DNA of 63,571 nt from Schmidtea nova (taxonomy: Eukaryota), in NCBI GenBank assembly GCA_044892505.1, contig CM097882.1, positions 13,516,430 through 13,580,000 of the forward strand. Reading direction: 5' to 3'. Below are positions 7,632 through 61,131 of the stretch, one piece after another; the stretch's first letter is position 1, and the number at the start of each line of letters is the position of its first letter. The translations under genes were made by a program, and so were the position numbers. A model generated the notes under the pieces. It was not told where the DNA came from. It saw only the letters and a program-made list of their open reading frames with translations, and ran no database searches.

Positions 7632-8035
7632 TTTTCAAATATTGTTCCATATCCTTTCATTCTTTTGTTTATATGTTTCTTCATATTTCTTTTTCGTTTA
7701 AGAATTCCGCCATTTTGTTTATTTTCAGTTTTATTTTCGTTAAACACATCAGTCACTTTACTAATTACTTGTGGCAAATGATGAATCACATCGGGCAATG
7801 AATCTTTAATTTCAGAAATGGCATTGGATTTTAGTGCAGGTAAAATCTTTGAATTATTATTTAACACATCATTGGCAGTTTTCATACCAAAATTTCCAAT
7901 ACGTCTAAGAATTGGTAATGCAAATCTACCTATCGTTTTCAACCAACCAGTTCCATATTGTTTACCTACAAAATACGGTAATTCTCCACCTGATTGGCTG
8001 TTGCTATAGAAACTGATAATATCTGGATTATTCAT
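7628..8035 (-). CDS. Putative protease-processed virion/membrane-active protein
   Basis: 135 aa; QSGG, QYGTG, QNGG motifs, amphipathic WLKTIGRFALPILRRIG, basic C-terminus; directly upstream of MCP. Confidence 0.6.
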   Translation of the reverse strand: MNNPDIISFYSNSQSGGELPYFVGKQYGTGWLKTIGRFALPILRRIGNFGMKTANDVLNNNSKILPALKSNAISEIKDSLPDVIHHLPQVISKVTDVFNENKTENKQNGGILKRKRNMKKHINKRMKGYGTIFEK

Positions 8036-9050: not shown

Positions 9051-10080
9051 TTATTTTACGAAAATGTAGAGTCAAATGAGTCTTTGTATCTTTTGAAAAT
9101 TTAATTAATTTTCCACTGTCATCACGAATATTGATTTCAATGTTGTTTATAGTTGATGTTGAAATCGGCAAATACATTGGATTCTTTATTTCAATTTGTA
9201 CAACTTCGCCTTGGTCATATTTCTTGATCCAAATTGATTTTAGGAGGGGAACTTGTACATCTCCAACAGTCACTGGTTCAATAATGTTGCTGTAAATGAA
9301 CATTTGCTGATGAAGTTGTAAAATTTTGGGGATTTTTACACCAATTATTTCGGTATCAGTATATGTTTGTTTCTGTAGACCCAGAGATTTGGTTAAATTT
9401 GAATCAAAAGTAATTTTTGAAATATTATCCTGAAGAATAATTTTAACCAATTCATTATTGACAAGTTTCAATTTTTTAAATGGAGATGGATTAATTTTCA
9501 TTAAATATCCTTGTAATTCCGGTAATGACGTTATGAATAATTCATCTTGAAAATAATAATCATTAACAGTTTTAATGTCATAATTTATAAAAATTCCAAA
9601 TTGTTCAAGACTATTATCATTCGTGAATTTTGGTAATTTTAAACGACAATGATCATTTTCACTTGTAATTGATATATTTTCCAATCCAAAACTTTTTGCA
9701 TGTTCAAGATCTGGAAATGTAATTTTAAATGGAACATGTGGGCAAACAATCACTAAATAATTATATTTTTCAATAAATACATCAGTGTCTGAACTAGGTT
9801 GAGAAACTATAACTTGAATTGTTTTATTTTGATTATTAATTCTCAAATAACTAATTTCTTGAATTTCTCTTTTAGTTTCAATTTGAATAAAAGAATTACT
9901 ATAATACGGAAACAAATTATACACAAAAGTAAAATCAATCAAAGCAACTTCCCAATCGTCATTACTATTTAAATAAATCGGATTTTGAAATTCTACAATA
10001 AAATTACTAGCTTCATTATTAGGATAAATAAGAGGACATGCATTGCTAGGCAAAATCATATAAAACTGGTTTTCTTTCAT
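9043..10080 (-). CDS. Minor capsid (penton-like) protein, paralogue 2
   Basis: Same N- and C-terminal motifs as 8028-9050, divergent middle. Confidence 0.85.
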   Translation of the reverse strand: MKENQFYMILPSNACPLIYPNNEASNFIVEFQNPIYLNSNDDWEVALIDFTFVYNLFPYYSNSFIQIETKREIQEISYLRINNQNKTIQVIVSQPSSDTDVFIEKYNYLVIVCPHVPFKITFPDLEHAKSFGLENISITSENDHCRLKLPKFTNDNSLEQFGIFINYDIKTVNDYYFQDELFITSLPELQGYLMKINPSPFKKLKLVNNELVKIILQDNISKITFDSNLTKSLGLQKQTYTDTEIIGVKIPKILQLHQQMFIYSNIIEPVTVGDVQVPLLKSIWIKKYDQGEVVQIEIKNPMYLPISTSTINNIEINIRDDSGKLIKFSKDTKTHLTLHFRKIND

Positions 10081-10085
10081 AATAT

Positions 10086-11171
10086 TTATTTAATCAATTG
10101 TTTTTCAGATATCCAACTTGGAGTTTCATAGCCATGCCATTTAACGTAATATTGTTTATATTTCCCATCAGTTTTGGTTTTTAAAATCTTTTGAATTCTA
10201 AAAACTGTGGGAGCTGGAATAACTTGAAGTTCTTGTTCGTAGAATTTACCCTCGATTACATTGTTTTCATGATCGGAAATAGTATACATGACAGGATTTT
10301 GATTAGTATCAACATTTGAGATTTGATATACTTCATCACTCCAATTACTATCAAAATTTTTGATGAAGGGAGAAGCACTGATTTTACTCATTCTCACATA
10401 ATCGCCTACTTTATATTTCGGTTTTTTATTAATTGATTTTAATCTATCTTTTATCCATCCATCAAAATTATTATTTGAATATACATCGATAGGTTTCATT
10501 TTATTTAATCCCGAATGCGGTGAACGATTGTAACTGGAAATAATTTTCGGTAAAACATTTATCCATGTTTTGTTACCTTGATACACAAAAAACTTTTTCA
10601 AACGATCTCTTAAAGTTCGATTAAATCTTTCAACATGAGCAGCTTTGAATTGAGAAAATACAGAATAATGATTGATTTCTTTGATCACTTCTTTTACTTT
10701 GCTGTTATAAAACTCTTTTCCTAAATTAAAATTAATTAATTTTTAAAAATTTAATTTCTTACCCAAATCAGTTTGTAAATTTCGTGGCTTCCCATCTTTA
10801 AATAAAGATTCAATAGCCTCAGCCATTTCATTAGCAGATTTAGTTTTTGTTGGAATAGCTCGTGCATAACGGCTAAAAACATCAATACAAGTCAAAATAT
10901 ATTTGTAACCCTTGTTAATTTTAGAATAAGGAATCATTTCCATTAAATCCATTTGCCATAAATCGTTACCCCCAAAAGTTTTATATTTCCGTGTAGGAAA
11001 TCTTTTCAACATTGGTTTATTTAAACTATATGCCAATTGATCAGATAGCCATTTCTGAGTTTCATTCTTTGAACTTTTTATTCTTTTTGCCAATTTTTTG
11101 ACTGAACCAAAACCATCGGGATCTTTTGGGTTTGTCCATATCGTTTTTATATTCTTCATGATTTTCTTCAT
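10086..11171 (-). CDS. Retroviral-type DDE integrase with C-terminal chromodomain, two exons (intron 10721-10762)
   Basis: WQMDLMEM (D1), QTDLG/KEFYNS after splicing (D2), HVERFNRTL (E), YYVKWHGY chromodomain. The 42-bp GTAAG...TTTAG intron contains a stop. Confidence 0.92.
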
Positions 11172-11233
11172 TAATACAACAATTTGTTAAAATATTTAAA
11201 TCTATATTATGTTTATTCGGTTCAGAAATTTTA

Positions 11234-11563
11234 TTACCCATTTCTTAAAGATGAGATTGCGCTTATTGCTGATAATACTATTGGAATTAATGTACCGAGA
11301 AACCCACCCTTTTGTTTATATATTATTTTTCGCATAAGATTTCTATTTTTGGTATTCACTAATGACAAAAGTGAATTTTTATGTTTTTGTAGTTCAATTT
11401 TCTTTGATCTACTAATATTTACATTACCATGAACAATAAATAAAACGACTTCAAGTAAATCATCAATAACAAAGGGTGGGAAAGCTTGTAAAATTATCAT
11501 TCGCTTATTTGTTGGAGCTTTAACCAAAGCATTAAAATACGGTAAACTACGTTCAAATTTCAT
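11234..11563 (-). CDS. pX (mu precursor)-like core protein
   Basis: C-terminal KQKGGFLGTLIPIVLSAI resembles the adenovirus pX xGGFLPALIPIIAAAI motif. Confidence 0.65.
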   Translation of the reverse strand: MKFERSLPYFNALVKAPTNKRMIILQAFPPFVIDDLLEVVLFIVHGNVNISRSKKIELQKHKNSLLSLVNTKNRNLMRKIIYKQKGGFLGTLIPIVLSAISAISSLRNG

Positions 11564-11593
11564 GATTAAGATTTTTGTGTATATTTATTTCGT

Positions 11594-11755
11594 TTATAAT
11601 TTTATCCACTTCTTTACTTGTTTCTTTCTTTTACCAATCTTTTTGACAACTTTTTTAACTAATTTAGATTTTTGATCAACTTTTTTAAGAAGTTTTTGAT
11701 CAGCTTTTTGAACAGCTTCTTTATTTAACTTGACAATTACTTTTTTAAATGACAT
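11594..11755 (-). CDS. Small Lys-rich basic protein (53 aa), putative DNA-condensing core protein
   Basis: Hand-translated: MSFKKVIVKLNKEAVQKADQKLLKKVDQKSKLVKKVVKKIGKRKKQVKKWIKL; fills the gap between ATPase and pX-like gene. Confidence 0.6.
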   Translation of the reverse strand: MSFKKVIVKLNKEAVQKADQKLLKKVDQKSKLVKKVVKKIGKRKKQVKKWIKL

Positions 11756-11776
11756 TATTATTTCATTTATTTGTTT

Positions 11777-12400
11777 TCAATTTTGTTTATAAACCGTGAC
11801 TCCTTTTTCGTTAAATATATCCGTTCGGATACGTAAATCATCAGGACATTGTTGAGTAAAATCAAAGAATAAATATCCATGAGGAACTTTAGTAGCATCT
11901 TGAAATGAATTAATTAAGAATTTCCTATCATTAAGGTAAGCTTGTCTTGCTAAAAAATCAATAATTGTAGCATCTCTTGGGTTTTTGAATATAACCAAGT
12001 ATTGAACATTTAAATTACGAGTTCTGTGACTACCACCTTGATGAAATAAATTTTGAGTAATGAAAATTACAGTAACTCCTAAATGTCTACTAATTTTTGT
12101 GAATAAATTATTAAAATCTTTTTCTTTATTTGCTTCTTGGTACAAATCATCGATAATTATAACATCGCCCTGACGTAATCTAGATGACCAGTTTTTATCA
12201 AACCCTTTTATAATTGTCATTTTTAATTTACAGAATTGATCTTGAGTCAGTCCATGTTCTTCATCAGCTCCTCTATGCCAGTAAATTTTATTGAATTTTG
12301 ATTTAAACATTTTTGATTGCAACAATTTACATACAAATAATGTTTTTCCACTACCACTTGGGCCCACTATTTGATAAACTGCATCATTTCTTAATTCCAT
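11777..12400 (-). CDS. A32/FtsK-like DNA packaging ATPase
   Basis: Walker A GPSGSGKT, Walker B IIIDD, RH...FITQNLF, YLVIFKNPRD. Confidence 0.92.
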   Translation of the reverse strand: MELRNDAVYQIVGPSGSGKTLFVCKLLQSKMFKSKFNKIYWHRGADEEHGLTQDQFCKLKMTIIKGFDKNWSSRLRQGDVIIIDDLYQEANKEKDFNNLFTKISRHLGVTVIFITQNLFHQGGSHRTRNLNVQYLVIFKNPRDATIIDFLARQAYLNDRKFLINSFQDATKVPHGYLFFDFTQQCPDDLRIRTDIFNEKGVTVYKQN

Positions 12401-12456
12401 TTTTATTTAATTAATTAATTAATTTAATATTGTTTATATTTATTCAATTTATAAAA

Positions 12457-12939
12457 ATGATAAGTAATATTAATTATAAGGGCAAGTGTTTAGTTCCAAA
12501 CATGATATTTCCTGTTGGAAAACCCCAGCAAGTTATAGATAGGAGCGGGAAGTACCCTATTTTATTTTTCAGATCGGGAAAATGCCGTGTAATGGGTTGT
12601 AAGCAACCGTTAAAACCAGATGATTTGAAATATAAAATTTCCGATTTAAAAATTCAATCGATCACTATAACATTGGATATGGGTAAATCCATAAATTTAT
12701 ACGAATTGCAAAATAAAACAGAGTGCTGGTACGAACCCGAAATATTTCCAGCTTTAAGATTAATAAATTATAACCCTATTTGTATTAATATTTTTTCAAG
12801 TGGAAAAGTTGTAATATTAGGAATTAAAACATTGGATTATTTTAATCAAGTAAATGAAATTAAAAATTATATTAATTCATTAATTAATAATGAATTAATT
12901 GATGAAAAATATCTCGATTTATTATTTAATTTTGTTTAA
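12457..12939 (+). CDS. TATA-binding protein (TBP)-like protein encoded by the element
   Basis: Two TBP half-repeats: LFFRSGKCRVMG and KIQSITITLD...YEPEIFPAL...IFSSGKVVILG. First ATG at 12457. Confidence 0.85.
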   Translation: MISNINYKGKCLVPNMIFPVGKPQQVIDRSGKYPILFFRSGKCRVMGCKQPLKPDDLKYKISDLKIQSITITLDMGKSINLYELQNKTECWYEPEIFPALRLINYNPICINIFSSGKVVILGIKTLDYFNQVNEIKNYINSLINNELIDEKYLDLLFNFV

Positions 12940-20243: not shown

Positions 20244-21134
20244 TTACAAGTGAAATCGTAAAACATACAATCTGAAAGTTTTTATCAAAACAATATAGAC
20301 AAGTGGATTTATGGCTGTCAAATATACGCTCAAAATTGATAAAACGTCGCCCAGATCTCTAGTGAAGGAGATTCTAGGATTATAAAGTGAAACTGTAACT
20401 AATGAAAACGAAATAAAAGAGACGAGCCCATAGAAAAAACTTGAGATACAGTTCGCTAGTGAAAACCTAACGTAGAGACGTTTTCTAGATGATATTTCCA
20501 GCTGCATATCTTTAATGATTTTCTTTCGGATGTTTCGGAACAAAATCACACTCGAAATGGCGTTTAGAATGAAAAGCAAAATGAAAGGAATCAAGTAAAC
20601 GAAGACGATATTAAACATAGTATACCGCAAATCATTCCAACATCGCCACTTAGTTTCATTATTTGAGGAGGTTTTGGCCTCAATTCGTACCCCAAAGAAG
20701 TTCACAGCATTTATCAATGCAACTATCCCCACTGAAATAAGAAATATTCCCCTAAGCTTCGACTTTTCAATCATTTGATAATGAAACGGAAAGACGATAA
20801 AGGTAAATCTGTCAACAGAAAGAAAGACCATTGAGATGATATTGAACAATGAAGGATACCAAAATAGAATCATGGTCTGCCAGATGTAGCAGTAAAACAT
20901 CACGTAGTCCTTCGGTAACGATTCATTCAAGTTCTTTTCTTTGAAGTTCATCAAAAGTAACACGACTATTGATATGATGGAGGAAACAGTCTGGAATTTG
21001 ATTATGAAATTCGTGCATAACGACGCAAAACAATGACACCTGATGAAGGTTAACAATCTCAAATTAAGGATTAGTATCATCCCCATACAGATGCAATGAA
21101 ATATAAAAAAATGTAATATTAATGAAAAAGTCAA
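20244..21134 (-). CDS. Class A (rhodopsin-like) GPCR, 5' end probably on an upstream exon
   Basis: Multiple hydrophobic helices, SVDRF (DRY-like), AINPLVY (NPxxY); AG just upstream of the frame. Confidence 0.85.
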   Translation of the reverse strand: MTFSLILHFFIFHCICMGMILILNLRLLTFIRCHCFASLCTNFIIKFQTVSSIISIVVLLLMNFKEKNLNESLPKDYVMFYCYIWQTMILFWYPSLFNIISMVFLSVDRFTFIVFPFHYQMIEKSKLRGIFLISVGIVALINAVNFFGVRIEAKTSSNNETKWRCWNDLRYTMFNIVFVYLIPFILLFILNAISSVILFRNIRKKIIKDMQLEISSRKRLYVRFSLANCISSFFYGLVSFISFSLVTVSLYNPRISFTRDLGDVLSILSVYLTAINPLVYIVLIKTFRLYVLRFHL

Positions 21135-35384: not shown

Positions 35385-37399
35385 TGGGGATTTGCACTGG
35401 GTATCACAAAAAATCACAAGCTTTTTTTTGTTTAAAAATAATTTAATTAATTAATTTATAGATTTAAATTTTATATATTATATATTAATATAATTTTAAA
35501 AATATATGGCCAACATCCTCATTAATATTAGAAATACAAATGCCTCAGTGTTTATATATTCAGAGAAAAACTTGAGAAATTTGAAATTGTTGTATTAACG
35601 GGTCTCATTGGAAGATAATGTCAAATGAAAAATACAACTCTGTGCTTTGTATGCGGAGTAGAATGGCATGTACGTAGAGAATTTCTAACAATTTTATGTC
35701 AAAAAAGTCAATTGCGTGAACACAAAGAAAATAAATGCTACACCAACTTGGAAAGAAGAAGAGTTGGAACGAAAAAGAATGGGGGAAACCATAATCACTA
35801 TCCAAATTGATCAATAAGATATCAACAGAAAAATCAACACCAGCGACGAACAGTAGCAACTATTGAAATTAATGCCAATGGATTATTTGGATGATGCAGA
35901 GGACAAATACAATGATGCACAACACCCAAAAACGACGCTCTTCGCTACGGGAGGCAATGATCGGAACAATTTATTAGGTAATTTTGATATTAATGTAGAT
36001 ATTTGTCATAGTTTTACTTATGATGTAAATAATATATATGTGTGTGTTGAGGTTCCCAGAATATCAACTTGGTATCTTATATAAGTAAATAAGATAACAC
36101 TGGTTCATGCTAAATTTTTATTAAATAACAAAATGATAATTACCAAGATAAATTAAAATCAAACAACTTCTTTCAAATCAAAATTTGTTTGTGTGTAAAT
36201 GTGTTATGATTGTAATAGGTGATGCGTGAATGCTGCTCTGAGATCGATTTTTGTATGCTCTATTTTAATTATTAGTCGATAACGACTATAAGATTTTTAA
36301 TCGCAATAATTTTTGGGGTGATTTGACTGAAAAATTAGTCAGTTTATCTTAATCTGTGAATAATGATTGTTATTTGGCTTCTTGAGTTGATTGAAATTGT
36401 TTTCAAAATAGAGTTGTTTTAAAAACAGAATTGTTTTCAAAATTATTTTTTAACCTTGGAATATTAATTCATTTTGCTAACCTTTGTAGGTAATAAATAA
36501 AACTTTTTAAACAAACAGTAATTTATTTACTTTTAATTTATTTAAACAATCTGTATTATTTATTTTATTATTATTATTATTATAATTTATTGAATTAAAA
36601 TATTAAAATATAAATGAAAATATAATCCATTTTCCAAATAGTTTTTAAAATTAATTTACATAAAATATTCTTTCAAAATTATATAAAATTTTGTCCATCA
36701 CCATAAAAAATGTCAATATATGTTCGCAAGACCACAAATGATAAATTGTCAAATTATAAATTGTCATGATGATAGAATACAAAAATTAATTGTCAACAAT
36801 ATTTTAATAACAGTAATAAAATAAAATTATCCCATAAAGTAAAAATTGTCACATGGTCAGAGCTTAATCATATAATTGTTAAGAATATACAATAGATAAT
36901 TTCAACATCAAACAAAAGTCAAATAAGATCAATAGTAAAATATCATCATATAGAATCACTAAAATCATAATGTCATTGAAGTTGATATTTTCTATTGATA
37001 ATTGAATTGTCATTGCCATCCGATACACATGTATATTTAATCTGTACCTTCCATTACCCACTGTATAATATTTTTTTAGAACCCCTATTCTACGTCCATC
37101 TTCTAATATATAAAATAATATAAACCCTTATCTAATAAAATATGTAATTTAAAAAGTCGTAATGCGCATAGTTCTAATGTTAGTAATGTCTTTAATGCTG
37201 ACCACACTTTATTAAATAATATTAAAAATATTAAAAATAAAAAAGATAATAAAATAAAAGAAACAGAATATAATAATGAAATTTTTTTAAAAACAATAGA
37301 GAAAACAGAGAGAAATGATAAAATATGGATGAATGAAATATTAGTGAATTCAATTTTTTTAATTAGAAGCAAAATATATTCACTGACGAAGAATGGAAA

Positions 37400-43130: not shown

Positions 43131-43483
43131 AAGACAAGAATGGGAAGGCTATTGCCAGAAATATTAAAAGGATCAAACATTTATAAGAAAGGGGATATAA
43201 GGAGTATCAAAACTTCTTTTATATAAAAAATAATTTAATTAATTAATTTAACAATTAACATTTTACATATTGTATATTAATATAATTTTAAAAATATATG
43301 GCCAATATTCTCATTAATATTAGAATTACAAATGCCTCAGTGTTTAAGTATTCACAGAAAAACTTGGGAAATTTGAAATTGTTGTGTTAGTTAAATAAAT
43401 GATTATGGAAGAAGATTTGAATTTACTTGCTTCTAACAAATTTAAAATTACAATTAATTTAATTTAGTTATATTTTATTCCAG

Positions 43484-48253: not shown

Positions 48254-48427
48254 ATACTTTAAACTTTATTAATTAAAATATACTATGATAAATTAAATTA
48301 TGATAATTTATTAATTTTTATAGCTATTAAATTTGATGTTCTTGAAACATGCCAGTCGTTGTAGTGGATGACCGTGATCCTAACGGGAAGCCTCTGCGAA
48401 GTTTGAATTATTTATTTACAACACATG

Positions 48428-49333
48428 TGTTCGTCTGTGTGTGCTTTTTGATTTTCTATTCGCATCTGTATGCGCTTAATTTCGAAATCTTATTTTGCTC
48501 GCGTCTGTGTGCGCGATTTTGTCTGGGTAATTTTTTAGATTGTTGTTGATTGAGTTATTTATTGATTTTTTGCTTTAGAGGAATTTATTGTTAGATTGGT
48601 TGTTTTATTATTGCAGTTTTTTGAGGGAATTTAGATTTTTTGATTCAAGAATTGAAATTAATTTAAATACAACTATGAATGAAAGCGAAAACGAAGTAGA
48701 AAACGATGAAGTTAATAATACTGATTTATCTGACGACGATTTAACAGAAAATGATGAAAAAGAAGATGATGATATGAATACAGATGATAATGAAAATAAT
48801 CCAGCAAAAGAAGACACAATGCTTTCTGAAAACAAAGATAACAATTCTATAGAAGCTGATGTGGAAATCTCAGAAATTAACTCCCATATCAGATGTCGCT
48901 TTCGCAATGATTCAAATGAACTCTTCAGATGTCGCTTTCGCAATGATTCAAATGAACTCTTCAGATGTCGCTTTCGCAATGATTCAAATGAACTCTTCAG
49001 ATGTCGCTTTCGCAATGATTCAAATGAACTCTTCAGATGTCGCTTTCGCAATGATTCAAATGAACTCTTCAGATGTCGCTTTCGCAATGATTCAAATGAA
49101 CTCTTCAGATGTCGCTTTCGCAATGATTCAAATGAACTCTTCAGACTGAACCTTCTTACACTGATTAATAATAAAATCCTTGGAATCGTGTTACTTTTTA
49201 TCAAAAACATTAATTTGATTATAGCTCGAACATTTGGGCCTTTTGGTCAAATTGTCTGTGATTTTGGATCAAATCATGTAGTTATGAAAACAAATAAAGA
49301 TTCTCACTCGGACGTTCAATCAATGATTTTTCA
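48428..49333 (+). repeat. 5' LTR (906 bp; seven 36-bp repeats at 48890-49141)
   Basis: Matches 53699-54568 except for one extra repeat unit. Confidence 0.95.
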
Positions 49334-52300
49334 TGGTAGCAGAGCGTGGTTCCCACCGGGGGGCCACGCACACTCTGGAAAGCCGTTAGTCGACCTTTTT
49401 ATTAAACATTCTTTTATGCCTTTTGTAAAAATATTAAAATGGGTTAAATTTGTAATTGGAGTATGGACCAACATTCCCTCCCAGGCGCGTTTTGAATGGA
49501 AAGTGAAAGTTGGAATGGCTTGGCCACCGGATATTGTGAAAGACGGCTGCTATGGGCCCCAGCATTCTTTTAAATTCCGGGAAATGTTGCAACAAGATAA
49601 AATTTTGAAAGGCTTAGAACCTTTTGTAGGAATAAGGGGAGATAAAAGTAATCATAAAAAGTTCTATAATCAAATTGTTAAAAATATTAAATTGGGTAAT
49701 CATGAAGACCGGGTAAATATGAATAGAATAGGGAAATTATTGAGTTTTTATTCAATAGCAAGTGGTGATGAAAGGACAAGTCTAAAGGATAATAGTTCGC
49801 GAGTGAAAGAAAAGGAAACGGAGTCCACTTTACATTTTGTTTTGCGATTGAGACGTAGAATACAGATTTTTGTTAAGACTCTAGCAGGTAAAACCATAAC
49901 ATTGGAAGTTGAACCGAGGGACTCTATTGAGAAAATAAAAGCCAGGATCCAAGAGAAAGAGGGAATCCCGCCTGATCAACAGAGATTGATATTTGCAGGT
50001 AAACAATTAGGAGGCGAAAGAATCCTGTCAGATTACCACATTCAAAAGGGGTCTACTATTCATCTGGCACTGAGATTGTGTGGAGGGAATGATGAAGAGG
50101 AGGAATTAGAGGAAGGATTGAGAAAGAAGAGGAGTGTCAAATATAGATTGACGAAATTAAGAAACAGGTGGATGAATGATATGTTGGCAGAAGATGCAAC
50201 ACATGTCCTTGATGAATATCAGGAAGCTATGGAAAGTGCCATAGAGAGTTTTGAAAGATTGGTGGATATTAGTAAAAGATTAGGAAGGTCAGATACAACA
50301 ACGGGGCTAGAATCGGACTTACAAGAGATAGAAAATAAGAACGAGAAGGTGGAAGAGTTAATTTCGTCAAAGGCCAATCAGTCAGTTAGGTCGGATGACA
50401 GCAATACAATTAAAGAGATCAATGGAAATGAAACGAAGAAAAGACTAGAAAAGATGCAGAAGATACGGATCCAGATATTTGATGGACACCAAAAAGAATA
50501 TGAAAGTTGGAAAGCCGCTTTCCATACGTGTGTTGATAGTGCCCATGGAGATGATGATGAAAAGATGTTACACCTTCGATCCTATCTGAAAGGTGAACCG
50601 CTAAGGCTGATCGAAAATTTAGGATTTTCTGCAACGGGTTATAAAATGGCAAAAGAAAAGCTTGATAAAAGATATGGCGGGGAAGAACGAAATTACTTAG
50701 CTGCTCTGGAAGATATCGACAGGTTCCGACCCGTGCGTGAAAATGAAATGCTGGAAATCGAGGCGTTTGTTGGGCTATTGGAAACGCTAGAAGTTAGAAT
50801 TATTAATAATAGACGAGAGGGCGAAATGAACAATAGTTACTTATTGAAGAGATGCCTGCAAAAGCTACCCTGCTCGCTGCTATACAAGTGGAAGAAAGAC
50901 TTTAAGGAGAGAAAGGTAACCGAATGTATCCAAGATTTGAGAAATTGGTTACAAGATGAAGTCGAGCTGTTAAGATCAACAAGAGAAACCCTTTATGGAG
51001 TCGGGGATGGCAATAGAAGAAACGATTGGAAGAGACAGGATGGACCGTCAAGAGAACTTGGGAATCCAAGGCAAGGGAACCGGACACTTGTTGGGCAAGT
51101 AGCAGATTGGAAGGAAGACAAGACAAACATACCAAGAGACGGATTGTTGAGTACAAAGTTGAAGTGTTGGAAATGCAAGGAAAATCATTACTTGGATCAA
51201 TGCAGAGAATTCAAAGAAATGAACCCCGCAATGCGACGTAAAGCAGTAGGAGACTGGAAGTTATGCTTTAATTGTTTAAAGTCTAATCATGTAGCGTCGG
51301 AATGTCGAAAGGCTTCATTCTGTACTAGAGAAGGGTGTAAGCTGAAACACAGTAACCTACTGCATGTGGATCAGTCAGAGTCCAAAAGGAAGGAAAACAC
51401 ATTGATGTCGGCTACTAAAGATGAATTATTAAAAAGGGAGCGAAAATACCTAAGCTTGAGGACGATACCGATCTACCTTGAGCATGGAGCGAAGAAAATT
51501 AAAGTAAATGCGCTGTTAGACGATGCAAGCTCCATTAGCTACATAAGTCAGAGCATTGCAGACGAGTTGGGTCTGAAGGGGAAAGAGGAAATAGTTCCTG
51601 TGAGCGTCATCGGAGGTCATATTCAAAATATGACAACAAGAATAGTCACGATGACGTTGATAAGTTATGATCAGAAGATGAGGAAAAAGTTTACAGCTGC
51701 AGCGGTGAAGAGTGTAACCGGGGAAATGCGAGTGATAAATTGGGCAAAGGAAAAATGGAAATGGGAACATCTAAAGGATATACGGTTTCCAATGCTTGAT
51801 GAACGGCAAGTGGTGCAAGTTCTTATCGGAGCCGATTATTTAGGGTTGCAAAGAGCGTTGAAGGAAGTGGATGGGAAGATGAATGAACCGATTGCGAGAT
51901 TAACGCCGTTAGGCTGGACCTGTGTTGGTAATACGTCGATAAGAAAGCTGGGGAGTCACCAGAGTAATTTTACGCGAACGTTTTTTGGCCAGAGAGACGG
52001 ATTGGAAGACCAAATGCAAAGGTTTTGGAAAATTGATGAAATCGGGCTAAAGGAATATATCGAGAGTTTTGCACTTAAAGCTCAGGAAGAAGTTTTTAGT
52101 GAAAATCAAACTGGTGATAGCGATTTTAATTCAAATCAAAATGAAGATAACACGAAAAAGTATAATATGGCTGGTGAAATGATTGACAACTCTGAGTCGG
52201 TTGATATTGCAAGCGAGGAAGGAATAAATACTTCGTCAAACGAATTAGTGCGAAATGTAATGACGGAAATTGAATCGACAATGGTAGTAAAAGATGAGCG

Positions 52301-53573
52301 GGCAGTAAATGAATATAATTTTGAAGAAAACTGCATTGTCGATGAGAAAATTGTGGAAAATATAAATGATATCGAAGAAACTTGTAAAATTGAGGAAATT
52401 ATTGGAGATAACTCTTTTAATGGGGAAAATATTGAGCATGGAACAGTTGAAAATTCCAAAGTTGATAAAAGTGACGATGAAAAGGTTAATGATATTGAAA
52501 CAAATCTAGAAGATGATGGCAAAATTACCAAATATGTCAGTAATAAAGGTGAAAAAGTAGAAACGATTGAACGAATAAATTGTCCGGTTATAATTGCAGA
52601 GAGAACAGGTAGTGAACAGTCAGCATTTCTTCTAATGAAAAGTAAAGATGCAATTAGTGGCAATAAAATGGGATCATTTGACATGGTTGTGAAAGGTTCA
52701 ACTGGTGATGATGAAGTTCTGGCTGATAAGTCGGATTTAGTAATACAACTTCATTCAAAGATAGAAGATCTTGAAAATAAAATAAAAACGGGCGAATTGG
52801 AATATAAAAGGGAAATTAATGAATCAAAAGTAAAATTTGCGAATTTAGCTAAAACTGTAGAAACGTTATCAGCTAAGATAGAAAAGGTAAATGATATTAA
52901 TGGAAAATTGGCAACTGTAAATCGGGAACTAAAAATAAAGATTAAACGAAATGAAATCGATTTAAATGAGCTATCTGCGAAAGGAAGGCATTTAAATGTG
53001 GAGATGAAAGAAAAGGAAAATGATTACCTAGAAAAACTTCGAGAGGCTAATGACGAAATCGCTTCTCAGCAAACCTTGGTGAAGGATTTGACGGAAGTAA
53101 ATGGTAATTTAATAATTAAACTAAATGGCAATCTGGGAATGATGGAAGATAATAAATTAAACTCGAAGTCTTTAAAGATAGAAGAAGATTTCTTGAAAAT
53201 GGGACTTAGTACTAAAAAGGAGTTGGTTAAAGAAGTCTCAAGGAAATTGGGAAAGAATTTTGAAGAAGAAATTTATATTTCGAACAATATAATGAATATT
53301 GATGAAAAATTAGTCGAACCCAAAAGAGATGGCGAATTAATTGAGAGTCAGTTGATTAAATTAGAAGTTAATGGAAAGGAAAATAGAACGAAATGGTGTC
53401 TGCTGCATGGTCCGGTTGTGGGGCGTGATGGGGAAATTACAAAGGTTCGGATATTGTGCTATACAGCTGCAAAATTCATAAATAAATGCATCATGCAAGA
53501 GGCATGGATGCAAAGAATTGATTGGAAGGAAATACTTCCTCAGGAGGTGATGAAAAAGGAAAACCAATGTTGA
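48675..53573 (+). CDS. 1632-aa fusion: acidic region, 12-aa repeats, UBA1-like fragment, linker, ubiquitin, Gag (DUF1759-like, CCHC), aspartic protease, acidic/coiled-coil, pol scraps
   Basis: First ATG at 48675 in ORF 48588-53573; [35 protein letters not shown]...[34 protein letters not shown]. Confidence 0.9.
49203..49329 (+). other. Ubiquitin-activating enzyme E1 (UBA1)-like fragment inside the LTR (second copy 54438-54564)
   Basis: [31 protein letters not shown] resembles UBA1 [20 protein letters not shown]. Confidence 0.7.
49334..49351 (+). promoter_or_regulatory. Primer binding site, tRNA-iMet type
   Basis: TGGTAGCAGAGCGTGGTT directly after the LTR-terminal CA. Confidence 0.9.
49860..50087 (+). 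other. Ubiquitin domain (76 aa, ends LRLCGG), preceded by a partial ubiquitin tail ending LRLRRR
   Basis: [19 protein letters not shown]...LALRLCGG; 59/76 identical to canonical ubiquitin by hand count. Confidence 0.97.
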
Positions 53574-53685
53574 TGTTATCAGACAACGGTACTAATTTCG
53601 TGGGAGCAACGGGGGAAGTGAGAGATGTGAGAATCGACGGTTATAAGATAACGAAGGAGTTAACGAGGAGAGTTGACGAGGAGTC

Positions 53686-53698
53686 AAAAGGGGGGGAA
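53686..53698 (+). promoter_or_regulatory. Polypurine tract
   Basis: aaaagggggggaa directly before the 3' LTR TG. Confidence 0.9.
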
Positions 53699-54568
53699 TG
53701 TTCGTCTGTGTGTGCTTTTTGATTTTCTATTCGCATCTGTATGCGCTTAATTTCGAAATCTTATTTTGCTCGCGTCTGTGTGCGCGATTTTGTCTGGGTA
53801 ATTTTTTAGATTGTTGTTGATTGAGTTATTTATTGATTTTTTGCTTTAGAGGAATTTATTGTTAGATTGGTTGTTTTATTATTGCAGTTTTTTGAGGGAA
53901 TTTAGATTTTTTGATTCAAGAATTGAAATTAATTTAAATACAACTATGAATGAAAGCGAAAACGAAGTAGAAAACGATGAAGTTAATAATACTGATTTAT
54001 CTGACGACGATTTAACAGAAAATGATGAAAAAGAAGATGATGATATGAATACAGATGATAATGAAAATAATCCAGCAAAAGAAGACACAATGCTTTCTGA
54101 AAACAAAGATAACAATTCTATAGAAGCTGATGTGGAAATCTCAGAAATTAACTCCCATATCAGATGTCGCTTTCGCAATGATTCAAATGAACTCTTCAGA
54201 TGTCGCTTTCGCAATGATTCAAATGAACTCTTCAGATGTCGCTTTCGCAATGATTCAAATGAACTCTTCAGATGTCGCTTTCGCAATGATTCAAATGAAC
54301 TCTTCAGATGTCGCTTTCGCAATGATTCAAATGAACTCTTCAGATGTCGCTTTCGCAATGATTCAAATGAACTCTTCAGACTGAACCTTCTTACACTGAT
54401 TAATAATAAAATCCTTGGAATCGTGTTACTTTTTATCAAAAACATTAATTTGATTATAGCTCGAACATTTGGGCCTTTTGGTCAAATTGTCTGTGATTTT
54501 GGATCAAATCATGTAGTTATGAAAACAAATAAAGATTCTCACTCGGACGTTCAATCAATGATTTTTCA
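53699..54568 (+). repeat. 3' LTR (870 bp; six 36-bp repeats at 54161-54376)
   Basis: Direct repeat of the 5' LTR. Confidence 0.95.
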
Positions 54569-55308
54569 ACATGAATTAAATTCGATCATAGTGTTTTGAC
54601 GCGGTCTTGTCAGCTCATTCACGACGCATGAAAAACAACGCTGTGAGTGACGTATTGATGTCCAGATCCTGTTGAGCCAAATATTAGGGGTGGCAGAAAC
54701 AACTCTTGTGGATGCGATTACTTACCCATCTGGCTTTTAAGGAACAGGCAATACCGCTTTTTACGACTGGCAATATTAAAACATATTGTCTTCATCTTGT
54801 CTTCTCTTATATTTATACAAATTAATAATAAGTTATCATAATTAAAAAAAATTATATTAAAAATAACAATACTTAGAAAAATAGTAATTAACAAAAATAA
54901 TTATGATAAAAATAATTAATAAAAATAAGAAACGTGTGAAAATAAAATAATAATAAATAATAAAAATAAAAATTAGAAACGCTGTAACTTTTATTTAACC
55001 GAAGTTAAAATAAAATAATTTTTATTCACAATTGTTTTTATAAGTTGGCTTAATTTTCAGTCACTGTTTTCTATTTTCTTTTGTTTTGCCAATATTATCC
55101 GCGATATCTTTAGTTATTATTGTAGTGCCTCCGTCATATTCATAATATAAATATTTATATATAAATTAAATAAAATAAAATATTATAAGATTATATATAT
55201 ATATATATATTATCATAATTATCTTTTTTCACCTTTGATCTTTTTTTATTATTATTATCAATAATTCTCATAATGACTATAGATCAAAATTTTTTTTTAT
55301 AAACAATA

Positions 55309-55341
55309 ACACAATATTTCGGCACAGCCTTTATCAAGTGT
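55309..55341 (-). ncRNA. Variant minimal hammerhead motif in pLTR
   Basis: Reverse complement of 61231-61263. Confidence 0.65.
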
Positions 55342-55440
55342 GTATTTCTATCGTTATATTTACTTAATCCTAAATAGTAGCCTTAATTATTTTTTTAATA
55401 TTTTATAATGATTTTATTGGATGAAAAAATTTATTTTATT

Positions 55441-58042
55441 TTAATTTTTTTGTGCGAATTGAATGTTGATGGACAGTTTGTATTTTTTTATGAAAAAAGT
55501 CTCGGAAGCTAATCTTTGTAATGAATTTTTGAATCCCTCTTGTAGGATCTGGCATTTTGTTTCTTCTATAGATGGAGTTGTTTTATGTACTTTTTCCCAG
55601 TGTTCGTAATAATTACTGGTTTTGATTTTAGTATGTTCATTAAGTCGGGTGCGAAAAGTTCTATGTGTTTCTCCTATGTAAGTAGCGTCACATTTTTGAC
55701 AAGAAAGTTTATATACTATATTTTTGGAAAAGCAAAAGCATCGGGTTGTGGAACGACAAAGACATTTATGTTTGGAGATGTTGGAAATTGGTGGCTTTCG
55801 GAGTTGTGATTTTAACGGTGCGGAGGTTATGAACGTTGGACGGATGTGGATAGGCAAATCTGTTTGATTAAAAATGTTGGTGATTTTGTTGGCTGTAGTG
55901 TCATTTAGGAAAGGTAATCTTAGATATGTTGTGTGTTTGTTATTGTTATTGTGTTTCTGGCGTTTTCTATTGTTGCGTTTATTGTGGTATGGTTCGTTAA
56001 GGAAGTGTTTCTTTACAAAGTCTTCAGGGTATCCATTTTGGAGGAATCGTATTTTGAAGTTTTCTAATGTTTCTTGTATTTTGTTTGCGTCTGAACAGTT
56101 TCTTATGGCTCTTTTTCTTTCTCCTATTAGTAATGCGATTTTGCGTTGAAGTGGAACGTGGCTTTTCCATGGGAGGATATGACCGCTATGTAAACCTTTA
56201 GAATATAGCTCGGTGTTTGCATTTAGTGTATCTTGGCCTTTTGTGAAACTTACCATGGTATCTAAAAACGGTATTTTACCTTCTGTGTTCGGTGTTTCAA
56301 AAGTAAATTGTATGTTGGTGTTAGTAGAATTTGCGTGTGATAGGATTTGATTGAGAGGGATTGTGGAGACTATGAAGATGTCGTCGATGTATCGTTTCCA
56401 GAAAAGTATTTTGTCCCCAAAAAAAGATATGATCTTAGATTCTATAAAGTTCATGTAGAAGATGGCTAAGATGGGAGAAAGGTTATTACCCATGGCTAAT
56501 CCATGAATTTGTTTGAATGGTTTTTCTTTAATTATGACAGTATCTGAATTTATTGCTAATTTTAGAAGTTCTATAAAGTCTTGTTTAGTTAAGTCTGCGA
56601 GGTCAGTATTGGCTTTATGAGTTTCAAAGAAAGAAGCTGCGATATCGAAAATGTTATTCTCTCCGTGAAGAGGAATAGATCCGTAAAGATTGGAAACGTC
56701 AAGAGATCCCCAGAAGTACTGTTGTCCTGAGTTTAACGGAAGAGACGTATTTGTAATTTCGGAGACGAATTCAGTTGTGTTTTTAAGATGAGAAGGAACC
56801 AAAGGCAAAAGTGTTTTTAGAATTTCTGAAAGAACTTTAGAAAGTGTTGTGGAAGGAGTGTCAACTGCAGATACAAGAGGTCTACCTTTTAAAGGACTTT
56901 TGTGATCTTTAGGTAACATAGTCATATTACTAGGTAAAGGCTCACTGCAGTTGCATTTTAAAAGTAAATCTTTGATTTGAAGGTTAATTTGTTTATTTGC
57001 AAGTGTTGAAAGTTTCTTATTGTATAAAATCTGAGTCGATGCAGGTAAGATTATTTTGTTTATCGGTTCATAGTTCGAGAGATGTTCTTCAAATAGAGTA
57101 TTGTATTGTTCTGTGTCAAGAGCAATTAGTCGATTTGTTTTATCTGATGGAAGAATTGTGAAGTCTTTGGAATTCTTAATTTTCTTTATGTTTGAAGTGA
57201 AAGAATTTTGTGTTGAGCAATGTTTTTCAAGAAAGATAATTTGTTCTCTGACTAAAGTTTTGACTTTAGTTTCTAAACAGCTGAGTTTTTCTTCAAGTTC
57301 AGTCGAAAAGACAGGCATATTTGGATATGTTCTACGATTTGGATCCAGAAGATGATTGTGCTTTTCAGCTAAACTTGAAGATTTGGTGGATGAAATTGGT
57401 TTTAGATGGTATCCTATTTGTCTTCTTAGGCTTATAAGAGAGGCGTTAGTGATGATTTCGGCTTTTTCTAAATCTTTCTGGTTAGGTGGAGGAACAAAAG
57501 ATGGTCCTAGAGCGAGGATGTTTTCTTGTGTTTTTGAAAAAATGTGATTAGATTTGTTTGTAAATGGAAGAATTGAATTTGAGTGTGAGTTAGTGTCTTT
57601 AGTGTTGTTTGAATTTGTTGAAAGTAGCTTTTCTAATTTTTTTTTTATGCTTGCGAATGTCAAGATTTTTGGAGAAATTCTGGCAACAAGTATTATCTTC
57701 ACAAGTAAGAGGAGCACAAGGAAAACTAGTAAATTCGTTTAGCTTTTTGTAACAAGCTGAAATGCTAAGCTTAAGCCATTCTTTTTCCTGTTTTTCTTTA
57801 AGCTTCAATGCTTGTAAAGATGGATAGGTTGATTCCAGTTTGTTGGTAACAGTCAGGCCCACGGGAATGATGTTTCTTCTTTTGCATTCTTTTAAAAAAT
57901 GTAAGTGTGATTTGATTTTGATGATTTTGAGACTATAAAATAACGATAGATCTACTCGGTGATGGGCGTCCGCCAATATACTATCATAATTATCTTTTTT
58001 CACCTTTGATCTTTTTTTATTATTATTATCAATAATTCTCAT
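55441..58042 (-). pseudogene. Penelope RT/GIY-YIG ORF, frameshifted at the T10 run 57637-57646 (6 nt in copy C)
   Basis: SLDVSNLYGSIP, GLAMGNNLSP, RYIDDIF, IPFLD, VYKLSC...YIGET. Confidence 0.88.
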
Positions 58043-58079
58043 AATGACTATAGATCAAAATTTTTTTTTATAAACAATA

Positions 58080-58112
58080 ACACAATATTTCGGCACAGCC
58101 TTTATCAAGTGT
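58080..58112 (-). ncRNA. Variant minimal hammerhead motif in pLTR
   Basis: Reverse complement of 61231-61263. Confidence 0.65.
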
Positions 58113-58548
58113 GTATTTCTATCGTTATATTTACTTAATCCTAAATAGTAGCCTTAATTATTTTTTTAATATTTTATAATGATTTTATTGGATGAAAAAA
58201 TTTATTTTATTTTAATTTTTTTGTGCGAATTGAATGTTGATGGACGGTTTGTATTTTTTTATGAAAAAAGTCTCGGAAGCTAATCTTTGTAATGAATTTT
58301 TGAATCCCTCTTGTAGGATCTGGCATTTTGTTTCTTCTATAGATGGAGTTGTTTTATGTACTTTTTCCCAGTGTTCGTAATAATTACTGGTTTTGATTTT
58401 AGTATGTTCATTAAGTCGGGTGCGAAAAGTTCTATGTGTTTCTCCTATGTAAGTAGCGTCACATTTTTGACAAGAAAGTTTATATACTATATTTTTGGAA
58501 AAGCAAAAGCATCGGGTTGTGGAACGACAAAGACATTTATGTTTGGAG

Positions 58549-61131
58549 ATGTTGGAAATTGGTGGCTTTCGGAGTAATAATAATAATTATGATAGTATAT
58601 TGGCGGACGCCCATCACCGAGTAGATCTATCGTTATTTTATAGTCTCAAAATCATCAAAATCAAATCACACTTACATTTTTTAAAAGAATGCAAAAGAAG
58701 AAACATCATTCCCGTGGGCCTGACTGTTACCAACAAACTGGAATCAACCTATCCATCTTTACAAGCATTGAAGCTTAAAGAAAAACAGGAAAAAGAATGG
58801 CTTAAGCTTAGCATTTCAGCTTGTTACAAAAAGCTAAACGAATTTACTAGTTTTCCTTGTGCTCCTCTTACTTGTGAAGATAATACTTGTTGCCAGAATT
58901 TCTCCAAAAATCTTGACATTCGCAAGCATAAAAAATTAGAAAAGCTACTTTCAACAAATTCAAACAACACTAAAGACACTAACTCACACTCAAATTCAAT
59001 TCTTCCATTTACAAACAAATCTAATCACATTTTTTCAAAAACACAAGAAAACATCCTCGCTCTAGGACCATCTTTTGTTCCTCCACCTAACCAGAAAGAT
59101 TTAGAAAAAGCCGAAATCATCACTAACGCCTCTCTTATAAGCCTAAGAAGACAAATAGGATACCATCTAAAACCAATTTCATCCACCAAATCTTCAAGTT
59201 TAGCTGAAAAGCACAATCATCTTCTGGATCCAAATCGTAGAACATATCCAAATATGCCTGTCTTTTCGACTGAACTTGAAGAAAAACTCAGCTGTTTAGA
59301 AACTAAAGTCAAAACTTTAGTCAGAGAACAAATTATCTTTCTTGAAAAACATTGCTCAACACAAAATTCTTTCACTTCAAACATAAAGAAAATTAAGAAT
59401 TCCAAAGACTTCACAATTCTTCCATCAGATAAAACAAATCGACTAATTGCTCTTGACACAGAACAATACAATACTCTATTTGAAGAACATCTCTCGAACT
59501 ATGAACCGATAAACAAAATAATCTTACCTGCATCGACTCAGATTTTATACAATAAGAAACTTTCAACACTTGCAAATAAACAAATTAACCTTCAAATCAA
59601 AGATTTACTTTTAAAATGCAACTGCAGTGAGCCTTTACCTAGTAATATGACTATGTTACCTAAAGATCACAAAAGTCCTTTAAAAGGTAGACCTCTTGTA
59701 TCTGCAGTTGACACTCCTTCCACAACACTTTCTAAAGTTCTTTCAGAAATTCTAAAAACACTTTTGCCTTTGGTTCCTTCTCATCTTAAAAACACAACTG
59801 AATTCGTCTCCGAAATTACAAATACGTCTCTTCCGTTAAACTCAGGACAACAGTACTTCTGGGGATCTCTTGACGTTTCCAATCTTTACGGATCTATTCC
59901 TCTTCACGGAGAGAATAACATTTTCGATATCGCAGCTTCTTTCTTTGAAACTCATAAAGCCAATACTGACCTCGCAGACTTAACTAAACAAGACTTTATA
60001 GAACTTCTAAAATTAGCAATAAATTCAGATACTGTCATAATTAAAGAAAAACCATTCAAACAAATTCATGGATTAGCCATGGGTAATAACCTTTCTCCCA
60101 TCTTAGCCATCTTCTACATGAACTTTATAGAATCTAAGATCATATCTTTTTTTGGGGACAAAATACTTTTCTGGAAACGATACATCGACGACATCTTCAT
60201 AGTCTCCACAATCCCTCTCAATCAAATCCTATCACACGCAAATTCTACTAACACCAACATACAATTTACTTTTGAAACACCGAACACAGAAGGTAAAATA
60301 CCGTTTTTAGATACCATGGTAAGTTTCACAAAAGGCCAAGATACACTAAATGCAAACACCGAGCTATATTCTAAAGGTTTACATAGCGGTCATATCCTCC
60401 CATGGAAAAGCCACGTTCCACTTCAACGCAAAATCGCATTACTAATAGGAGAAAGAAAAAGAGCCATAAGAAACTGTTCAGACGCAAACAAAATACAAGA
60501 AACATTAGAAAACTTCAAAATACGATTCCTCCAAAATGGATACCCTGAAGACTTTGTAAAGAAACACTTCCTTAACGAACCATACCACAATAAACGCAAC
60601 AATAGAAAACGCCAGAAACACAATAACAATAACAAACACACAACATATCTAAGATTACCTTTCCTAAATGACACTACAGCCAACAAAATCACCAACATTT
60701 TTAATCAAACAGATTTGCCTATCCACATCCGTCCAACGTTCATAACCTCCGCACCGTTAAAATCACAACTCCGAAAGCCACCAATTTCCAACATCTCCAA
60801 ACATAAATGTCTTTGTCGTTCCACAACCCGATGCTTTTGCTTTTCCAAAAATATAGTATATAAACTTTCTTGTCAAAAATGTGACGCTACTTACATAGGA
60901 GAAACACATAGAACTTTTCGCACCCGACTTAATGAACATACTAAAATCAAAACCAGTAATTATTACGAACACTGGGAAAAAGTACATAAAACAACTCCAT
61001 CTATAGAAGAAACAAAATGCCAGATCCTACAAGAGGGATTCAAAAATTCATTACAAAGATTAGCTTCCGAGACTTTTTTCATAAAAAAATACAAACCGTC
61101 CATCAACATTCAATTCGCACAAAAAAATTAA
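58549..61131 (+). CDS. Penelope RT/GIY-YIG endonuclease (860 aa from junction-derived ATG)
   Basis: Uninterrupted frame with all RT and GIY-YIG motifs. Confidence 0.88.
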   Translation: MLEIGGFRSNNNNYDSILADAHHRVDLSLFYSLKIIKIKSHLHFLKECKRRNIIPVGLTVTNKLESTYPSLQALKLKEKQEKEWLKLSISACYKKLNEFTSFPCAPLTCEDNTCCQNFSKNLDIRKHKKLEKLLSTNSNNTKDTNSHSNSILPFTNKSNHIFSKTQENILALGPSFVPPPNQKDLEKAEIITNASLISLRRQIGYHLKPISSTKSSSLAEKHNHLLDPNRRTYPNMPVFSTELEEKLSCLETKVKTLVREQIIFLEKHCSTQNSFTSNIKKIKNSKDFTILPSDKTNRLIALDTEQYNTLFEEHLSNYEPINKIILPASTQILYNKKLSTLANKQINLQIKDLLLKCNCSEPLPSNMTMLPKDHKSPLKGRPLVSAVDTPSTTLSKVLSEILKTLLPLVPSHLKNTTEFVSEITNTSLPLNSGQQYFWGSLDVSNLYGSIPLHGENNIFDIAASFFETHKANTDLADLTKQDFIELLKLAINSDTVIIKEKPFKQIHGLAMGNNLSPILAIFYMNFIESKIISFFGDKILFWKRYIDDIFIVSTIPLNQILSHANSTNTNIQFTFETPNTEGKIPFLDTMVSFTKGQDTLNANTELYSKGLHSGHILPWKSHVPLQRKIALLIGERKRAIRNCSDANKIQETLENFKIRFLQNGYPEDFVKKHFLNEPYHNKRNNRKRQKHNNNNKHTTYLRLPFLNDTTANKITNIFNQTDLPIHIRPTFITSAPLKSQLRKPPISNISKHKCLCRSTTRCFCFSKNIVYKLSCQKCDATYIGETHRTFRTRLNEHTKIKTSNYYEHWEKVHKTTPSIEETKCQILQEGFKNSLQRLASETFFIKKYKPSINIQFAQKN

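Follow-up and report, generated by a model that had tools for sequence, protein, structure and literature searches.

Ubiquitin abutting Gag in a BEL/Pao-derived element of Schmidtea nova and its relatives, with a candidate host-processed junction

Retroelements normally set the ends of their structural proteins by their own protease or by a start codon. Here, we describe an element in a 63,571-nucleotide stretch of Schmidtea nova DNA (assembly GCA_044892505.1, contig CM097882.1, positions 13,516,430 to 13,580,000 of the forward strand; hereafter the window, with positions counted from its first letter) in which a ubiquitin domain directly precedes Gag in a single open reading frame (ORF). The element, at 48428-54568, shares with the BEL/Pao group (Belpaoviridae, Metaviridae-like) its long terminal repeats (LTRs) with TG..CA ends, a 5-bp target-site duplication, a primer binding site (PBS), a polypurine tract (PPT), a Gag in which zinc knuckles accompany DUF1759, and a putative Pao-type protease region, while its relatives also carry reverse transcriptase (RT), the Pao A17 region, integrase and DUF5641 in the usual order. 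It departs from that group in the in-frame ubiquitin before Gag, in an ORF that starts in the LTR and runs across the PBS, and in a variable slot for host-like fragments; in addition, the window copy lacks RT, RNase H and integrase.

The closest known systems resemble the element in part. In natural ubiquitin-fusion precursors (polyubiquitin, Ub-eL40, Ub-eS31 and FUBI-eS30), a ubiquitin or ubiquitin-like (UBL) domain ending in Gly-Gly (GG) sits head-to-tail on the N-terminus of its partner and is removed by host deubiquitinases (DUBs), which process ubiquitin precursors in general (PMC4522658, PMC8354635, PMC6721733). Even the low-identity UBL protein FUBI, with its GG end, is cut from eS30 by USP36 (PMC8354635), and the ubiquitin moiety of Ubi1 is needed for productive eL40 expression (PMC6721733). 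The arrangement described here differs in that the partner is Gag, the ubiquitin is internal and lies behind a variable leader of 150-720 residues, and cleavage is a prediction. In cytopathogenic pestiviruses, the host-cut GG end of an inserted ubiquitin sets the N-terminus of the downstream protein. These insertions arise when host ubiquitin-coding RNA, a known source of cellular insertions, recombines into the polyprotein ORF (PMC13517609, PMC8310069). They are sporadic RNA-virus recombinants within infected animals, whereas the fusion described here is inherited across a diversified subclade and precedes a structural protein.

The start of the ORF recalls Ty1/copia-type elements, in which the gag start codon lies inside the 5' LTR; however, those belong to another superfamily, and in the present element the LTR encodes about 220 codons and the ORF goes on across the PBS. 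Finally, gene capture by LTR elements (plant LTR retrotransposons, planarian Burro and retroviral transduction) likewise places host mRNA pieces between LTRs, probably by template switching (PMC3726574, PMC6431247), but in the present elements every fragment keeps the frame and precedes a putative cleavage module, and the ubiquitin is conserved while the others are lineage-specific. Within the full-text literature searched, a scope outside which most subscription journals and Repbase Reports fall, no description of a ubiquitin–Gag BEL/Pao element was found; the initial annotation of this DNA, likewise, knew of no described BEL family with this layout.

The ubiquitin–Gag element and its reading frame

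The central feature of the element is a complete ubiquitin domain followed immediately by Gag. The 76-residue domain matched PF00240 with an E value of 1e-26 and ubiquitin structures in the PDB with E values of about 1e-33. It is identical to canonical ubiquitin at 59/76 positions and retains K6, K11, K27, K33, K48, K63, L8, I44, H68, R72 and L73, with K29R, V70A and R74C among its changes, and Gag starts directly after its terminal LRLCGG. In an AlphaFold model of the ubiquitin–Gag segment, the beta-grasp fold was predicted with a pLDDT of 82-87, the CGG tail fell below 50, and a long helix started two residues later; a Foldseek comparison of the modelled domain with solved ubiquitin gave TM scores of 0.93-0.96. 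This anatomy, in which fold, GG end and adjoining Gag coincide, cannot be due to chance. The features of the element are as follows:

48423..48427 (+): left target-site duplication ACATG, the same five bases as outside the 3' LTR
48428..49333 (+): 5' LTR, 906 bp, TG..CA, containing a 36-nt tandem array and the start of the long ORF
48675..53573 (+): single ORF of 1632 codons plus stop (ATG at 48675, stop at 53571-53573)
48889-49145: 36-nt tandem array in the 5' LTR, 7.1 units
49334..49351 (+): PBS TGGTAGCAGAGCGTGGTT, 18 nt, beginning at the first base past the 5' LTR
49548..49562 (+): leader motif TGCTATGGGCCCCAG, peptide C-Y-G-P-Q, between PBS and ubiquitin
49572..49820 (+): captured HSP90 middle-domain fragment, ORF residues ~300-382, in frame and joined to the ubiquitin tail
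49821..49859 (+): 13-residue C-terminal end of a preceding ubiquitin unit, with RRR in place of RGG, aligning to the prior-unit end in polyubiquitin chains
49860..50087 (+): ubiquitin, 76 residues (I1 for M1), ending LRLCGG, ORF residues 396-471
50088..51449 (+; 3' bound approximate): Gag, with an N-terminal long-helix region, DUF1759 (ORF residues 602-746) and two zinc knuckles
51450..52097 (+; bounds approximate): aspartic protease region (LLDDAS) and a following block conserved in relatives
52098..53685 (+): broken pol region, three short remnants plus ~430 residues of unrelated acidic/coiled-coil sequence, open to the stop
53686..53698 (+): PPT AAAAGGGGGGGAA, ending at the base abutting the 3' LTR
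53699..54568 (+): 3' LTR, 870 bp, 6.1 repeat units
54569..54573 (+): right target-site duplication ACATG, matching the left copy

The ends of the window copy are those of a BEL/Pao element in every respect (TG..CA LTRs, 5-bp duplication, PBS and PPT). Alignment of the two LTRs revealed no mismatch, the sole difference being one additional 36-nt unit in the 5' LTR, and the element is a very recent BEL/Pao-derived insertion. Our end analysis thus bears out the young element with LTRs, target-site duplication, PBS and PPT of the initial annotation, apart from the equal LTR lengths that its coordinates implied, as the LTRs differ by 36 nt. Within the window, which has a composition of about 30% G+C, we found no second copy, solo LTR or autonomous partner of the element; public metagenomes yielded ten more BEL/Pao sequences that bear a ubiquitin or UBL domain at the same place. 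An exact-protein look-up of the 1632-residue ORF returned no matching record. The window contains no tRNA gene, hence no primer tRNA is assignable from its data.

These ends also bear on whether the assembly could have produced the structure by falsely joining a retrotransposon to polyubiquitin and HSP90 genes. Although the region is repeat-rich and six runs of N occur elsewhere in the window, the element itself is free of N, its perfect LTRs and matching 5-bp duplication enclose the whole structure, every junction is in frame, and the same ubiquitin–Gag join recurs in independent assemblies of other samples. We consider an artefact of this kind barely credible.

The long ORF reads, in order, an acidic and 12-residue-repeat leader encoded by the LTR, a PBS peptide, further leader, the HSP90 fragment, the ubiquitin tail, ubiquitin, Gag, protease, the unrelated insert and the pol remnants. 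All junctions within it are in frame, and it contains neither stops nor frameshifts. From 48588 to the terminating stop at 53571-53573, no in-frame stop occurs, against 149 and 203 in the other two frames, and these frame-by-frame counts bear out the single stop-free frame of 1632 residues that had been reported. At its 5' side, the frame is open from a stop codon at 48576-48578 through to ubiquitin, whereas the other frames hold 40 and 74 stops over 48428-50100. The ATG at 48675, LTR position 248, is the first ATG after 48470, and we infer that translation begins there; the ubiquitin of the window copy, like that of the relative P0123, has no Met at position 1. The LTR-encoded part of the ORF, about 220 codons, consists of an acidic stretch followed by the 36-nt array, translated as a 12-residue repeat, after which the PBS is translated in the same frame as G-S-R-A-W.

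Downstream of the junction, Gag is well supported (DUF1759 with an E value of 6e-11 and 42.9 bits, against a cut-off of 25.4). For the protease, Pfam DUF1758 and Asp_protease_2 scored below their cut-offs and LLDDAS stands in place of D-[ST]-G; the region is about 40% identical to relatives. The corresponding motif in P0121-P0127 is LLDDAS, or LLDDGS in P0125, P0126 and P0127, not D-[ST]-G, and its conservation across the clade suggests that LLDDAS/LLDDGS is probably a functional protease variant. Over 688 residues, the Gag–protease (Gag-PR) region of the window copy is 40% identical to that of P0121, the nearest full-length relative. Beyond the protease, the window copy has only the three short remnants of pol and no RT, RNase H/A17 or integrase, and the pol region was broken by at least three internal deletions and one insertion. 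The insert of about 430 residues that follows the protease has no relative in Pfam or the PDB and gave weak coiled-coil noise only. With RT, RNase H and integrase deleted, the window copy is a non-autonomous derivative.

A BEL/Pao subclade with a conserved L-x-G-G tail

Relatives of the element were sought with Gag-PR alone as the homology query, since a query including ubiquitin returned mainly polyubiquitins and nothing on the element. The relatives come from metagenome assemblies at ENA and JGI, most of undefined host, and were supplemented by an exhaustive representative search and a metagenome scan. The Gag-PR search revealed BEL/Pao polyproteins at 34-41% identity. Among them, the complete relatives P0123, P0124, P0125 and P0126 encode RT, the Pao A17 region, integrase and DUF5641, and in all four PF00240 lies 130-155 residues before DUF1759, the same layout as in the window. 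The contigs of P0121 and P0122, the two nearest relatives that lacked a precomputed ubiquitin match, do encode ubiquitin, interrupted by one stop in L006 and one frameshift in L005. Further carriers were P0158, P0166 and P0168 from the exhaustive representative search and L009 from the metagenome scan, which together with the window brings to 11 the sequences in which a ubiquitin or UBL domain abuts the same Gag N-terminal motif.

In a neighbour-joining tree of Gag-PR (100 sequences, 465 columns; computed without support values, and with L009 and P0166 omitted since they cover too little of the region), all nine placeable ubiquitin-bearing sequences formed one clade, despite identities of only 34-42% between the window and the other members and 34-56% among members. 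In ubiquitin-less relatives, Gag starts with a Met 10-30 residues before a K-R-x-x-K-x-x-L-T-R motif, and the L-x-G-G end of the carriers sits exactly where those relatives have their first Gag residues; in the ubiquitin-less L008, the Gag ATG lies 36 nt past the PBS. Because the fusion position matches the Gag Met start of ubiquitin-less relatives and the carriers form one clade, the ubiquitin–Gag fusion is, judged by this comparison, an inherited subclade trait, added at the natural Gag N-terminus. A recent capture by the window copy, as had been implied, does not agree with these data: the members share 34-42% of Gag-PR residues with the window, and the subclade includes autonomous elements with RT, RNase H and integrase. 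An independent ubiquitin capture in each lineage was also considered and rejected, given the identical position and the single clade of all placeable sequences.

On the sister branch of the ubiquitin clade, P0216 carries an N-terminus that resembles a THAP zinc finger instead of ubiquitin; either the gene model is chimeric or this is another domain added at the N-terminus of a BEL/Pao Gag.

Inspection of the ubiquitin sequences revealed that the tail stays while the remainder of the domain drifts. The L-x-G-G end was retained in 10/11 sequences, and in an alignment of the window copy with P0123, P0124, P0125 and P0126 the only invariant ubiquitin columns were I30, L73, G75 and G76. In P0123 and P0126, identities to ubiquitin are down to 22/76 and 18/76 and the lysines, I44 and R72 are gone, but the tail remains and Pfam still matches the domain (E values of 6e-9 and 3e-9, respectively); L009 behaves likewise. 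The first residue after GG varies, being Asn in the window and P0166 and Gln, Met, Ser or Gly elsewhere, so that no N-terminal residue rule emerges. Selection acting on the fold and the scissile end would be expected to leave such a pattern; selection acting on the ubiquitin signalling surface would not. The same comparison leaves no conserved basis for the ubiquitin-pathway modulator that the initial annotation had proposed, as the lysines, the I44 patch and R72 are lost in several members.

Could the ubiquitin be a functionless passenger, a template-switched host fragment that persists merely through its open frame? Capture of gene fragments by LTR retrotransposons is common (PMC3726574), and the planarian Burro elements carry many host-like domains (PMC6431247). 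The HSP90 fragment of the window copy has no counterpart in its relatives, unrelated host-like fragments occur in those relatives, and the ubiquitins of P0166, L005 and L006 are damaged. Such a passenger, however, would not be expected to occupy the same position in 11/11 sequences, as the ubiquitin does and the other fragments do not, nor to mark the nine placeable sequences as one clade across a Gag-PR identity of 34-42% between the window and the others, nor to remain recognizable to Pfam at 18-22/76 identity with L-x-G-G in 10/11. We therefore regard a passenger origin as decidedly improbable.

We propose instead that the ubiquitin serves as a processing signal. The polyprotein ORF would open inside the 5' LTR, read through U5, the PBS and the leader, and reach Gag by way of the in-frame ubiquitin or UBL domain. 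Host hydrolases of natural ubiquitin precursors (polyubiquitin, ubiquitin-ribosomal protein fusions and FUBI-eS30) would then cut after GG. The products would be Gag-protease (Gag-Pol in autonomous members) with a fixed N-terminus and, to be discarded, a separate leader-ubiquitin protein that comprises the part encoded upstream. The ubiquitin would thereby insulate Gag from a peptide made up of LTR, PBS, leader, cis-acting signals and captured fragments. That host ubiquitin C-terminal hydrolases release Gag from leader-ubiquitin by cutting after GG is the reading we favour, with a probability of roughly 0.65.

A second possibility is that the domain stays attached as an integral N-terminal UBL of Gag, where it might help solubility or folding, or let the proteasome, ESCRT or trafficking factors engage Gag. 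Many DUBs and E1 make use of R72, the I44 patch and the lysines, all of them lost in the divergent members, and a UBL and a retropepsin are known to coexist in one uncleaved protein in Ddi1/Ddi2 (PMC7072860). A chaperone-like benefit of the sort suggested by the Ubi1 ubiquitin, which aids eL40 expression (PMC6721733), is also plausible and could coexist with cleavage. Nevertheless, the invariant L73, G75 and G76 define a processing site at the exact domain boundary, and the upstream peptide, to which LTR repeats and the PBS contribute, varies extremely, a poor fit to a functional capsid N-terminus. Integral UBL domains, moreover, usually lack a terminal di-glycine. On balance, permanent attachment seems unlikely to us.

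Several observations weigh against release of Gag by host hydrolases. Cleavage is predicted from sequence, as are the proteins and transcripts of all members; of the earlier proposal of a host DUB site kept before Gag, the conserved GG has gained comparative support (L73, G75 and G76 invariant in the five complete elements, L-x-G-G in 10/11) while the cut itself stays a prediction. The window copy alone retains R72, and divergent members lack the I44 patch; recognition by common DUBs is thus not assured. P0166, which at 57% has the highest identity to the window of any member, lacks one glycine and has a scrambled middle segment; it looks like a decayed copy. The stop and the frameshift inside the ubiquitins of L006 and L005 also fit decayed copies, although single copies prove little. 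The sample is small, with 11 sequences and a tree without support values. Lastly, an internal start codon would also be compatible with the data, depending on where in the LTR transcription starts.

Were release of Gag by host enzymes to hold, it would be new for a retroelement lineage to hand the definition of its Gag end to host ubiquitin processing and to keep to this over a long divergence. Nature would then have its own version of the ubiquitin-fusion technique used in the laboratory, and a parallel to the sporadic pestivirus ubiquitin insertions, and an ORF that crosses LTR, PBS and leader without harm to Gag would be accounted for. For annotation, the fusion carries a warning: ubiquitin-containing "uncharacterised proteins" of at least 2000 residues in invertebrate or metagenome data may be BEL/Pao polyproteins.

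Mosaic ubiquitin, captured host fragments and the leader

Comparison of the ubiquitins by segment revealed an uneven resemblance to the host protein. Identity to canonical ubiquitin was distributed as follows:

Window: 20/25 at residues 1-25, 22/25 at 26-50, 17/26 at 51-76
P0124: 23/25 at residues 1-25, 21/25 at 26-50, 14/26 at 51-76
P0125: 22/25 at residues 1-25, 18/25 at 26-50, 7/25 at 51-76

P0125 and P0126 are 56% identical in Gag-PR and only 23% identical in ubiquitin. The tail of a preceding ubiquitin unit is attached in the window (13 residues) and in P0124 (27 residues). By these segmental identities, the ubiquitin is a mosaic, its N-terminal two thirds host-like in three lineages, and the pattern points to repeated template switching onto host polyubiquitin mRNA. 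RT, copying element RNA toward its 5' end, would switch within ubiquitin onto a host polyubiquitin mRNA and enter the preceding unit; in the window copy, a second switch would have led onto HSP90 mRNA and then back to the leader. Polyubiquitin and HSP90 mRNAs are abundant under stress, which fits such a route. Overwriting from host ubiquitin also offers a counterpoint to selection on the tail, as it alone could keep the GG-proximal sequence ubiquitin-like in three lineages, but not in P0123, P0126, P0158 and L009.

The features of the window ubiquitin read from its sequence at the outset (59/76 identities, the named lysines and I44, LRLCGG before Gag) were confirmed by Pfam, PDB and alignment, and the partial upstream unit ending in RRR is indeed present, with 13 residues. 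The polyubiquitin origin suggested for it stands for at least part of the ubiquitin, because the tail of the preceding unit is attached. The accompanying claim that only one site was left cleavable is moot, since 13 residues do not make up a folded ubiquitin, and no DUB would be expected to act on such a tail, however it ends; for the same reason, we rejected the idea that the RRR is required to block a second cleavage.

Fragments that resemble other host proteins lie upstream of the ubiquitin. In the window copy, the HSP90 fragment matched PF00183 (E value of 2.6e-12) and human HSP90-alpha at residues ~407-489 (E value of 9e-18), and no counterpart was found in any relative examined. P0123 carries part of a kinesin motor fused in frame to Sec23/24 trunk and beta-sandwich domains, and P0125 carries, also in frame, a TRAF-like RING and zinc-finger region. 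All of these host-derived coding fragments (HSP90 and polyubiquitin in the window; kinesin, Sec23/24 and TRAF-like in relatives) are intron-less with abrupt junctions, and the element offers a concrete candidate example of a retrotransposon that recombined repeatedly with abundant host mRNAs (polyubiquitin and HSP90). Neither the HSP90 fragment nor the absence of RT, RNase H and integrase figured in the initial annotation; both are additions of the present analysis.

In L003 (JGI Ga0209893_1000138), about 80 A residues at the contig start (positions 1-80) stand ahead of the TRAF-like part of the ORF, which may mean that transcripts were assembled from this sample or that the join is artefactual. 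As the TRAF-like region of L003 lies upstream of the PBS, it is presumably within a long LTR.

A more speculative extension is that ubiquitin, as a cleavable insulator, makes the 5' part of these elements a cargo slot, in which in-frame host fragments would be expressed as leader-cargo-ubiquitin and cut from Gag. We hold this to be doubtful. If true, the elements could sample and carry host protein fragments (HSP90, TRAF-like, kinesin, Sec23/24) without cost to the capsid, and some of the cargo might persist by interfering with host stress, trafficking or signalling.

Apart from these fragments, the 5' region displays features shared with relatives. The PBS 18-mer is identical and lies directly after the LTR in the window, L002, L003, L004 and L009, with one mismatch in the ubiquitin-less L007 and L008, and the ORF traverses the PBS in the same frame in the window, L003, L004 and L009. 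LTRs that start with TGTT behind a G-rich PPT were seen in the window, L002 and L004. In L004, the LTR contains at 3-318 a tandem array of 30-nt units that yields 10-residue peptide repeats at the opening of the polyprotein, comparable to the 36-nt units and 12-residue repeats of the window. Between PBS and ubiquitin, a peptide motif C/R-Y-G-P-Q/R was present in the window, P0123, P0125, P0126, L005 and L009, and at the DNA level a 12-nt palindrome-containing core, GCTATGGGCCCC, was shared by the window, L003 and L005 within otherwise unalignable leaders. The leader motif may be a cis-acting nucleic-acid signal for packaging, dimerisation or primer contact.

Other features of the window

Directly downstream of the BEL/Pao element lies another young retroelement (55205-61131). 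Two 300-nt direct repeats at 55205 and 57976, 99% identical, flank an RT ORF (55441-57717, minus strand), and a second, similar RT ORF occupies 58495-61131 (plus strand). An older LTR-like pair, 88% identical, was found at 35418-35597 and 43210-43389, and an integrase-core ORF at 33870-34580.

The left part of the window holds a run of large same-strand ORFs at 93-12400 (minus strand). Among them are a 1205-residue ORF that weakly matches endonuclease VII, a fragment combining integrase and chromodomain (10086-10688, minus strand) and a poxvirus A32-like packaging ATPase (11777-12400, minus strand); this region is possibly a Polinton/Maverick-like element. Adjoining the run, a 169-codon ORF at 12430-12939 (plus strand) encodes one TATA-binding-protein repeat (PF00352, E value of 5.5e-17).

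Between these elements, a single-exon ORF at 20244-21134 (minus strand) resembles a rhodopsin-family G protein-coupled receptor (PF00001, E value of 5.5e-6, below the Pfam cut-off); in a window so rich in transposons, it is among the few candidates for a host gene. At 24803-25987 (minus strand), an intron-less ORF of 394 codons combines a geranylgeranyltransferase-I beta (prenyltransferase) domain with the N-terminal all-alpha domain of the ribonucleotide reductase large subunit. Its best named match was to Macrostomum lignano at 48%, other matches reaching 74% and 68%, and it looks like another chimeric retrocopy of host mRNAs.

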